DNA of 64,000 nucleotides from Lepidodermella squamata. Taxonomy: Eukaryota > Animalia > Gastrotricha. Shown here piece by piece: positions 8,779-20,392 of the stretch (positions are counted from its first letter, which is position 1; every line of letters begins with the position of its first letter). A program made the translations under genes and the position numbers. Location of the stretch: the NCBI GenBank assembly GCA_047495785.1, contig JBLDXI010000017.1:2294001-2358000 (forward strand), read 5' to 3'. The notes under the pieces are model-generated. The model was not told the DNA's origin. It searched no databases and saw nothing but the letters and a program-made list of their open reading frames with translations.

Positions 8779-9664
8779 TAATCACTCGTGCGATTCTGCT
8801 TAGTAAAAATATGGTGCAATTATTACTTCAATTCCATGTATTAACGCTTGCTTTCAGATCAAAGAATAACAGTGATAATAATAATTTATAAATGTATTAA
8901 TGTTTTATGCCGCTGCAATCAGACTCGCTACATTATTTGGCACTCTGGTGAGAAATAAAGATTGAAAATTGCCTTCTTTATCCTGCCATTTTTTGTCTTT
9001 TTTTCCTCTCCTCATTTGCCGCGAAAATTGCTCGAGCCGTAACCTGAATACCGATGCTATACAGTTACACGTTTAACAGATGCTGAATACTTTCCGGTGC
9101 TATGTTATGGTATAGGCGAAATATGATGTGTTTGGGCAAATAAACCTTTGTTTTATAATATGCGCCCAGTGCATTGCGAGGCTCTCACACAAAGCCGCTG
9201 GCTCGGCGATTGAACGCAGGGCCGGCTACGCATCTAACATTATTAGCCGTCACTTTAATACCTCGGACGAGCCCACGTGTAATTGCGCTCGTATTTCCGC
9301 ATCTATTTATACCTTTGTATTTCTTTGTATCTCTATGGTACTCCAGACTCTTCACATGAGGCCAATGTTTCTTTGTTCCGAGGGTAATGAAAAACAACGC
9401 TTGCTAGGAAATGTGTTTATTTCATACCAGGCGATAGCTATTTCAACAAGGGAAGTTGAGTAGGTAAAGTAAAAGTATTGCAAGTACTTTGATTAAATTG
9501 GCAGCGCACCCAAAAAGTGCGCAACCTTTCCTGAGCCTAGGTACTTATGTAAATGGCCTCGCTTTACAGATTCACAACATGAAATTGTGCCTAACTAATT
9601 CAAGTCATTTTTCGCCAACCGCTGCAGCGCTCTTCCAACAGGATTCTGAAACTGCACGTTAGGG

Positions 9665-9720
9665 CAACGTCGTCGAAACCTTTGGTTCCAAATGTTTCCC
9701 AAAGATTTGTCATTAACAGC
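9665..9720 (-). promoter_or_regulatory. SECIS element in the 3' UTR of SelW copy 1
   Basis: Minus strand ATGAC-AAATCTTTGG-GAAACATTTGGAA-CCAAAGGTTT-CGAC: AUGA/GA core, 10-bp helix (one G-U) and apical AAA. Confidence 0.85.
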
Positions 9721-9770: not shown

Positions 9771-10198
9771 TTACTTCAGGGCGGCTTCGATGGCTTTGAC
9801 TACGCTTTCGAGCTTGGACTTGTCATCGACGAAGCCTTGGCCACCCTAAATAAATGAAATCAATAATTGCCCAATTCGGTGGAAATATTTAGAAACCTTA
9901 CCAGTTTCGAGTGTACCAAGTTGTCGTTGACGGTGACTTCGAACTTGCCCGTTCTCGTTGGCGTACCTTCGCCGGAAATGTCGACATCCGCCCCGAAGAT
10001 GTCTTGGATTTCCGTCTCAAACTTGCGGTACTTTAATAAAATGGAAAAATAGACCATATGGGTAACCTGGATAACTCAAGCTTACTTTGCTACCGTAACC
10101 TCAGGCTCCGCTAAAAGCAACAGATCATATGAAATTATGTCAATTGAAGGAAGCTTGAAATCGCCTTACCAGTAAACGACGTGAACCTTGACCGGCAT
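9771..10198 (-). CDS. SELENOW: Selenoprotein W (Rdx family, CxxU), 4 exons, 85 aa
   Basis: Exons 10198-10170, 10110-10086, 10030-9902, 9845-9771 give MPVKVHVVYCGAUGYGSKYRKFETEIQDIFGADVDISGEGTPTRTGKFEVTVNDNLVHSKLGGQGFVDDKSKLESVVKAIEAALK. In-frame TGA at 10103-10101; SECIS downstream. Confidence 0.93.
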
Positions 10199-11080: not shown

Positions 11081-11286
11081 CGCCTCATCCAATTTCGTTG
11101 GTAGAAGTGCGCTCTTAGAGGGCTCCCGCCCGGATGGCTCGGAGGGCACCCCGCCCCCAACCTAACCCTAACCCTAACCCTAACCCTAAAACCAACCCTA
11201 AACCTTCATCTTGACCGTCTGAGAGCGATCCCTCCGAGAGCGATGCCCTCTGAGAGCGCACTTCTAGCAACGAAACTGGAAAGGCG
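11081..11286. mobile_element. MITE-like non-autonomous element with about 28-bp terminal inverted repeats and a (CCCTAA)n core, copy 1
   Basis: TCCAATTTCGTTGGTAGAAGTGCGCTCT (11088-11115) versus AGAGCGCACTTCTAGCAACGAAACTGGA (11253-11280); CCTAAC repeats near 11158-11204; second copy at about 20187-20392. Confidence 0.8.
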
Positions 11287-12849
11287 AGAATAAACAATTT
11301 ACAAGTTGATTGATGTCAAAATGTGTCTTCAGCTTCACCCCATTTATCGGATGTCATGAAAATTGAACATAAGCAATGAAGAAAATACCTATCTAACTAT
11401 TAGTACCTCAAATCACTATACCGAAGTTGTTGAAGTCTGATGTCTGGGGCTTTAAAATAACAGATGTTCATGTTCATCGATTGCCCTTACAATCAAATAT
11501 TCGAGCATTGAGCATTGAGCGGCTAGAATAAAGGTATCTCCACGCTTCTTCGGGAATTCTTGAATTACACCTGATTTTCTCACACGGCTGAGTGATAAAG
11601 CAAATTAAATTCAACTAACCGAAGTAAAACGTGAGCTTCCAAACTTCGAATGTCAACCTTTGCCCTTATCAGGGAAGCTCAGTTGAATGTTTCGAATCTT
11701 CCAGGTATCATAACGGGATTTAGTATAAGATACTTAGTTCCTTTCAAATTTAAATTAAACCAGCAGAGATCACGGGAGGTAGCTAAGAGCGAAGAGTATT
11801 TCTCTTTGAGCTTAAAACTTTGGTGTGACGACAAAGGAGAACAAATTGGCATATAGCATTCGTCGGCAACAGCTTCTATCAACTGCAAGTATGAAATGTT
11901 CGGTCTCGAGTCTTGAATAGCCGTTAGCTGTCAGTCTCCTCTTTGAAGCGTGAAGCGTCTAGTCAAACGTCACGAGTGTCACTCGATCGATCACTTTTGC
12001 GGGTCACTCTTTTAGAAGCGCCTATGGAGACAATTAGGCTGGTGAAGGACGAAAATTAAAATTGCAAAAATTGTTTCCTGAGTTTTAAGAAATAAATCTG
12101 AACTATTTTTATTGATAATAACCCTGCCATTGAAAGGAAAATCCTGTGAGCACCCCGCGCACTCGAAAATCTTGGCGCTCAGCTGAGCGCGGCGTGAGGC
12201 GCGGGCACTTTAGCGCTAGCAGTACCCGCCTCTACCTGCTGGTTGTCCGGATGCTGCCTACAACTGTCTACCAAGCCCGGGGAGCTACAGTAAGTGCTGT
12301 TGCGAACAATACATCGATTCATTCATTTTCACTGACAGTCGAATCTCTCAAAAGATTCTTCAAGAATTCTTGAACCGATTCAGATATTTTGAGACCGCAA
12401 TTATCACAAAATAAGCTGAGCTGAAAAACAGAGGCGAAACACGTTGGGACAGTTGTTAGCTATCTAGGAGGCAGTGCCATGGCACCAGAAGCGCCCCGAA
12501 AACCGGAATTACGTTTCAAATCTAAATTAAAGCTCAGTTTAAGTAAATCAAACGCTTTCAAACTCATTTGGAAGATATTTAGAGATAACAAATGAACGCT
12601 GCTATAGAATATACTGGAGGATTTTTAAATGGTAGAGAATGCTTTAAAAGCTGTTAAGTTTAATGAAATTGGTGTTGTGCCAAATCGCCGACCTGATGAA
12701 CGTCGCTTATCAGGAATGCGAACTCTTTATTCACACGAAATTGGATATCTCCGGCTAAACAACAAGCCTGTAATGTACTCTAACGTGACATGTAATAAGT
12801 AAATAGCGAAATCCACATGCAAGACTGCTGAGTCCAATGCTTTAGTGAG

Positions 12850-12922
12850 ATGCCTTAGGGGCGTCGAGAAGCGCGGGTTCGATTTGGGGGTCGACTTTAC
12901 CGCGTTTCTGTCATATAGGCGC
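12850..12922 (-). promoter_or_regulatory. SECIS element (type 2-like) in the 3' UTR of SelW-like copy 2
   Basis: Minus strand GCCT-AT-ATGAC-AGAAACGCGG-TAAA-GTCGA-CCCCCAAA-TCGA-AC-CCGCGCTTCT-CGAC...AGGC: core, 10-bp helix with one mismatch, AAA bulge and apical mini-stem. Confidence 0.85.
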
Positions 12923-12978
12923 CACCGAAAGCATATTTGTTTGCAACAGCAGATGTTGGATTTCTCGCCTACTGTGTC

Positions 12979-13507
12979 CTATTGCGAACAGCAGCCATTG
13001 GATTTCCGGGTTTTCACCACAGCCACACTCTTCCGCTTGGCATCGTCTATCGGCTTGGTAATTTTTTCGAACTCGCCAGGCGCATCCATGGGTACAGTTC
13101 CCTATTTTTTGAACTATAATTACAAATGCTGAAACACGAGCGTAACTTACGTCAATAACTTGAACTAGTTCACCTTCAACCTTGACTTCTATCTTGCCGG
13201 TCTTCTCCGTGGTCTTTTCACCAGTCTTTGAATGGCAAAAATATAATTTCGGGGGAAAAGTCTAACATATTAACTCTTACTATCGAAACATCTTCCCCAT
13301 AGATGTTCGACAACTTGCTACTCAATTCGAGGTAAGCCTAGATAGAAAATCACGAGGTCAATTCAAAAGGATAAAGCGTAGCGCCTTACTATCTCGAATC
13401 CGGATCATCTACCTCTGTTTTCAAAAAAGAACACGTTTGTTACGTTATGAGTAAGAAGCGCCTTGAATTATTCCATACCAATAAATGAAGTGAACTTTGA
13501 CCGGCAT
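12979..13507 (-). CDS. SelW/Rdx-family selenoprotein paralogue with predicted UxxU motif and C-terminal CaaX-like tail, 5 exons, 102 aa
   Basis: Exons 13507-13479, 13414-13390, 13337-13281, 13225-13151, 13101-12979 give MPVKVHFIYUGRUSGFEIAYLELSSKLSNIYGEDVSITGEKTTEKTGKIEVKVEGELVQVIDGTVPMDAPGEFEKITKPIDDAKRKSVAVVKTRKSNGCCSQ. Exon 1 and 2 lengths (29, 25 nt) equal those of the SelW at 9771-10198. SECIS present. Confidence 0.85.
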
Positions 13508-20186: not shown

Positions 20187-20392
20187 CGCCGTTTCCAATT
20201 TCGTTGGTAGAAGTGCGCTCTCAGAGGGATCGCTATCAGACGGTGAAGATTAAGGTTAAGGCTAGGCTTAGGCTTAGTTTTAGGATTAGGGTAAGGTTGG
20301 GAGGTGGGGTGCCCTCTGAGCCATCTGAGAGGGAGCCCTCTGATAGCGATGCTCTCTGTGAGCGCACTTCTACCAACGAAATTGGAGGAGGC
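20187..20392. mobile_element. MITE-like element, copy 2 (inverted relative to copy 1), degenerate TTAGGG/TTAGGC core
   Basis: TCCAATTTCGTTGGTAGAAGTGCGCTC ... GAGCGCACTTCTACCAACGAAATTGGA; the interior is the diverged reverse complement of 11115-11250. Confidence 0.8.

Follow-up and report, generated by a model that had tools for sequence, protein, structure and literature searches.

A rare form of the antioxidant selenoprotein W (SELENOW) with two selenocysteine (Sec) residues in a UxxU motif has been predicted in amphioxus (Branchiostoma floridae; PMC3473315, PMC7539508) and in Ostreococcus lucimarinus (PMC7539508). Several prokaryotic families also have UxxU. In SELENOL, one SECIS serves both UGA codons (PMC3316567), and the diselenide of SelL has been shown. 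Gains of Sec from Cys are rare, and none has been inferred within vertebrates. The original prediction for the locus described here was an Rdx-family UxxU gene without precedent in its family. This reading was partly right. The gene is transcribed, has UGA at both redox positions, Cys and Sec, and carries a real SECIS; the claim that UxxU was unknown in the SelW family fails on the two SELENOW cases named above. Two features had been passed over, namely that HSKKxG is lost and that the C terminus reads CCSQ.

The locus was analysed within a window of 64 kb (the whole stretch of DNA under study). It belongs to a compact animal genome and has GT-AG introns of 49-64 nt. The interval from an ERGIC2-like gene (15149-13837) to position 9400 holds two small minus-strand genes, A and B. 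Their features are collected in Table 1. Our preferred reading, in which we place slightly better than even confidence, is that gene A is a divergent paralogue of the SELENOW1 type that still functions, and that its product would act as a double-Sec, membrane-anchored, slowly reset redox switch with partners unlike those of B.

Table 1. Positions of the features of genes A and B in the window
Feature	Position	Strand	Description
Gene A	13507-12979	-	Five coding exons, 102 codons, SECIS 65 nt past the stop
Gene A exon 1	13479-13507	-	29 nt; MPVKVHFIY and TG of codon 10; length and phase as in paralogue B and in coral and fish SELENOW1
First UGA of gene A (codon 10, ancestral Cys)	13414-13480	-	The 64-nt intron 1 separates TG (13480-13479) from A (13414)
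Gene A exon 2	13390-13414	-	25 nt; carries the second UGA, 13407-13405, at codon 13 (canonical Sec); cDNA joins its last 9 nt to exon 3
Gene A exon 3	13281-13337	-	57 nt (54 nt in coral and fish); cDNA joint 13225/13281
Gene A exon 4	13151-13225	-	75 nt; QVID in place of the family's HSKK; from cDNA joints and alignments
Gene A exon 5, coding part	12979-13101	-	123 nt including TAG; last helix, basic extension, CCSQ at 12993-12982; acceptor 13101 fixed by cDNA joint
Gene A SECIS, form 2	12863-12914	-	AUGAC core, helix II of 9/10 bp, AAA, apical mini-helix, CGAC; transcribed
Gene A polyadenylation signal	12726-12731	-	AATAAA; cDNA coverage ends near 12700
Paralogue B, canonical SELENOW1	9771-10198	-	C-G-A-U, 85 aa; exons 10198-10170, 10110-10086, 10030-9902, 9845-9771; UGA 10103-10101
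SECIS of paralogue B	9672-9713	-	AUGAC...CGAC core as in A; from pattern scans

The double-UGA motif U-G-R-U of the original prediction is present in the DNA. Exon 1 of gene A ends with TAT TG/gtatgg and exon 2 starts with aaacag/A GGT AGA TGA, and with the exon 1/2 splice predicted from homology, codons 9-13 read Y-UGA-G-R-UGA. In the SELENOW1 genes of coral, fish and a third animal, a Cys codon is split at the same place, as TG/T, and paralogue B reads TG/C. Since the homologues split a Cys codon here, the first UGA occupies the ancestral Cys position and is one base off it, and a Cys-to-Sec change is its simplest reading.

The finding hangs on a single base, 13414, and if this base were an assembly or sequencing error, gene A would be an ordinary CxxU SelW. 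A check of the base in other reads had been proposed, and it was found unchanged in a second sequencing run, X2. One X2 contig spans 13377-14672 at a depth of about 112 and differs from the window at 15 sites. None of these lies at 13414, 13479-13480 or 13405-13407, and both UGAs are untouched. Those within the ERGIC2 coding sequence are all synonymous, as expected for true polymorphism. Since the differences spare both UGAs, an error at base 13414 is very unlikely, and we give this explanation next to no weight. Against the 15 differing sites in this stretch of 1.3 kb, only one was seen in the adjacent 2 kb (11237-13235); haplotype divergence at the locus is patchy.

Transcription of gene A was seen in the cDNA run X1, whose adapter we take to be the SMART cDNA adapter and whose joints skip introns. 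Contigs from this run confirm the introns 13280-13226 and 13150-13102, join nine bases of exon 2 to exon 3 (loose end at 13337) and contain the SECIS-bearing 3'UTR down to about 12700. Gene A is thus transcribed, and its exons 2-5 are spliced. By depth bookkeeping, the cDNA contig reaches in the 5' direction only to the last 9 nt of exon 2. The frame is open across exons 3-5 up to the TAG at 12981-12979, in line with the three further intact exons predicted originally. The upstream exon 5 acceptors 13128 and 13113 were ruled out, as the cDNA uses 13101. An acceptor-like, pyrimidine-rich site (ccttctccag) at 13541-13540 on the minus strand, 33 nt before the start codon, could mark a 5'UTR intron or a trans-splice site.

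For intron 1, only the acceptors 13414 and 13408 keep the reading frame, and codon 10 is UGA with either. Acceptors 13461, 13412 and 13392 and retention of the intron all lead to early stops. Use of 13408 would give Y-U-U-S, with adjacent Sec residues, the second UGA kept and a protein shorter by two residues; alternatively, the mRNA might lack exon 1. The cDNA contigs start 3' of exon 1 and of the 5' part of exon 2, as such splicing would allow, and Schistosoma, Lottia and Trichoplax are reported to have SelW isoforms without exon 1. We consider both variants quite improbable. A contig can prove that a splice form exists but not that another is missing; 13414 comes after the first CAG past the U tract and yields an exon of 25 nt, which is conserved in coral, fish and B; and across 40 nt, with the donor included, exon 1 of gene A is 85% identical to that of B.

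When both strands of the window were scanned for the SECIS pattern, exactly two matches came up, in the 3'UTRs of A and B. Simulated windows contained 0.2-0.8 matches each, corresponding to a chance of 0.0005-0.002 per 300-nt UTR. One of the two matches is the well-paired element that had been predicted about 65 nt past the stop of gene A. Its region folds at a z of -2.8, and the AAA is at the right distance. With a looser setting, SECIS-like elements were also picked up behind homologous genes, and with a stricter helix-I setting the element of gene A was missed. Rfam models detected the SECIS of neither A nor B. Because the element of the expressed gene B was missed too, the silence of Rfam is treated as insensitivity.

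Paralogue B is an expressed CxxU sister 3.3 kb away from gene A. All three of its junctions were seen in cDNA, including that between exons 1 and 2 (loose end at 10111), which agrees with the predicted 29- and 25-nt exons and the Y-C-G-A-U motif. The third and fourth exons are fused in B (54+75 = 129 nt), an intron that A, coral and fish have kept being lost. Gene B is invisible to ORF callers.

The family placement of gene A was tested with a profile of 18 SELENOW1-like homologues, A and B being left out. Gene A scored 55 bits, compared with at most 13.5 in 2000 shuffles of its sequence and with 131 bits for gene B. The best PDB match is mouse SelW (2NPB; E 4.7e-5, 26.9 bits), followed by MIEN1 (E 0.57, 13.9 bits). 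BLOSUM62 scores show the same order, 111-161 for SELENOW1 and 80 for MIEN1. The exon lengths of A (29/25/57/75/123) resemble those of coral (L005) and fish (L006) SELENOW1, both 29/25/54/75. The Pfam Rdx model (PF10262) did not match gene A with X at the UGA positions, whereas exon 3 of gene B passes it. TIGR02174 gave gene A 18.5 bits (E 0.0018), below the cut-off of 34.2. Gene A has a branch length of 1.55, the median being 0.42. It has lost the conserved LVHSKKxGxG motif and reads LVQVIDG; H58, S59 and K60 are invariant in 12 homologues.

Residues 14-30 are the only part of gene A that favours MIEN1; within the helix 1 segment (residues 14-24), 8 of 11 positions are identical to the human protein. 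A small tree joined A and B with 79/75 support, short of proof. The grouping of A with MIEN1, which was represented by one partial row only, was not rejected (p-AU 0.153). UGA positions had been set to C in all rows, and Ser10 of the mouse construct likewise, so that the motif did not drive the grouping. Assignment to MIEN1/SELENOW2 was not adopted, the match scores being weaker overall than those for SELENOW1. We file gene A, as judged from its profile score and exon layout, as an atypical, fast-evolving SELENOW1-type gene and not as a canonical member.

The last exon of gene A encodes a Lys/Arg-rich extension ending in G-C-C-S-Q-stop, in a frame that is fixed by cDNA. All 8000 CXXX ends have been screened in yeast (PMC10320760); the enrichment of CCSQ was 1.91, compared with 1.61 for the natural substrate CASQ and 0.13-0.19 for CCSK, CCSP and CCSR. 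The end of gene A hence has a substrate-level score for farnesyltransferase, obtained in yeast and in another protein context. Human MIEN1 is membrane-bound via its C-terminal CaaX (PMC3527542). On the basis of the yeast assay and of MIEN1, the gene A protein probably bears a lipid anchor.

Divergence between the two genes was evaluated over 60 codons, giving a pS of 0.70, a pN of 0.38 and a dN/dS of about 0.26; dS is close to saturation. In their introns and UTRs, A and B do not align. Gene A has been under purifying selection for most of its history; the UGA at codon 10 is not dated by this signal. Both genes have an upstream motif in common, CGCTCTAT then GCTATATT, at about 13587-13555 and 10283-10263 (minus strand). 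Together with the AUGAC/CGAC core of both SECIS elements, this motif fits a tandem duplication or a shared type of promoter. In another animal (L011, about 1050-1630 and 1910-2880) there are two tandem SELENOW1 genes, both CxxU and each with a SECIS-like element, and the second of them lacks the same internal intron as B. Between A and B, a telomere-like (CCTAAC)n run of 7.5 copies and a 16-nt repeat occupy 11161-11258. This stretch is multi-copy in run X2, at about ten times the depth of its flanks, and a similar short repeat runs at 20318-20364.

No orthologue of gene A was found in the protein and metagenome searches or in a syntenic relative. A homologue search with the piece past the second UGA returned nothing, nor did the viral contigs searched. 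The sole metagenome match (L004) was a chance match in an unrelated frame, with the motif absent. The relative, from marine metagenomes (L001, 7328-11141), has 68% identity in the neighbouring SFT2 gene and keeps the order SFT2-EARS2-ERGIC2, which corresponds to 19975-13837 of the window, with no SelW pair after ERGIC2. Its ERGIC2 is a single open frame of 427 aa; that of the window has two introns.

These data bear on whether gene A is still a working gene. As a young pseudogene or near-null copy, it would mainly stop at the first UGA and yield nine residues, with decay just begun since B covers the function. Such a state would suit the long branch, the lost motif and the redundant paralogue next door, and two early UGAs three codons apart reduce read-through. 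The frame, the eight splice sites, the SECIS and a CaaX end of the working type are nevertheless all intact, and neutral decay keeps such features only briefly. When neutral decay was simulated, frame, start, Sec codon, splice sites and SECIS core remained intact in 12% of runs at 0.05 substitutions per site and in 1.4% at 0.1. In addition, spliced mRNA is present, and we know of nothing that would let a SECIS ignore codon 10 yet serve codon 13. We therefore regard loss of function as improbable.

It is also conceivable that the UxxU protein is made and that its first Sec is a recent, tolerated change, rescued by the existing SECIS. The protein would then be CxxU-like at a lower yield, and the diselenide would have no selected role. 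One base change is enough where a SECIS pre-exists, a route that has been described (PMC7539508). The selection signal spans the whole history of gene A and not codon 10 in particular, and the failure to find an orthologue is compatible with a recent change. On the other hand, two samples of the species share the UGA at codon 10 and yet differ from each other at many neutral sites nearby, the same change is predicted in two other lineages, and it is accompanied by other changes in the active-site loop (G-R-U-S in place of G-A-U-G). We judge a merely tolerated Sec10 to be unlikely.

Under the preferred reading of a functional double-Sec paralogue, gene A probably arose with gene B by tandem duplication. 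Substitution of one base, the first of exon 2, would have converted the split codon of Cys10 to UGA. The one SECIS already served UGA13 and would therefore insert Sec at both sites, as in SELENOL. The predicted product is a thioredoxin-like protein of 102 aa with U-G-R-U. Farnesylation of CCSQ and the basic tail, perhaps aided by acylation of the neighbouring Cys, would attach it to a membrane. The Sec13 position of SELENOW engages targets such as 14-3-3 (PMC8508763). In gene A, Sec13 would attack an oxidised target or an oxidant and Sec10 would resolve the intermediate, leaving an intramolecular diselenide. Diselenides have a very low redox potential and are hard to reduce (PMC2397514), and for this reason the protein would likely serve as a redox sensor or switch that resets slowly, rather than as a glutathione-cycled enzyme. 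The membrane anchor and the remodelled surface loop would give it partners of its own, different from those of B.

Several known proteins are close to gene A. SELENOW1 (mouse, 2NPB) is the best sequence match and likewise has five coding exons, a Cys codon split by intron 1, Sec13 and one SECIS. Gene A differs in having UxxU instead of CxxU, one extra residue past the motif, a replaced HSKKxGDG and a basic extension of 17 residues with CCSQ. MIEN1 (Rdx12, SELENOW2) shares the Rdx family and a C-terminal prenylation motif, CVIL in the human protein. CCSQ, however, predicts a farnesyl and not a geranylgeranyl group, and MIEN1 has CxxC or CxxU. The likeness to SELENOL, namely two Sec two residues apart in UxxU and one SECIS, is an analogy of chemistry only. 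All significant matches of gene A in the profile, PDB and TIGR02174 comparisons are SelW/Rdx, and these matches place it in a different family from SELENOL.

The UxxU SELENOW of amphioxus and Ostreococcus, here compared by description, agrees with gene A in the SELENOW scaffold, in Sec predicted at both redox positions and in a Cys-to-Sec change upstream of an existing SECIS. Gene A also lacks HSKKxG and ends with CCSQ, features that may set it apart from the two. The grouping of A with its CxxU neighbour (79/75 support) weakly suggests that its UxxU arose independently of these two. A stronger version of the preferred reading would make gene A a neofunctionalised SELENOW1, old and conserved, that had independently acquired a selected diselenide UxxU and a MIEN1-like anchor, forming a membrane-tethered diselenide redox switch. 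We regard this version as possible but doubtful. In a limited literature search, we found no description of a lipidation tail on a UxxU SelW or of a UxxU diselenide site combined with a lipid anchor in SELENOW1.

In summary, gene A opens no new class. Both previous cases of UxxU SELENOW were predicted from sequence. The locus adds to them what is probably a third origin, supported in part by cDNA, along with a putative lipidation tail and an adjacent CxxU control. Being expressed, sister B provides a ready-made control for what a diselenide does in the SelW fold and for the decoding by a single SECIS of two UGAs that are three codons apart.
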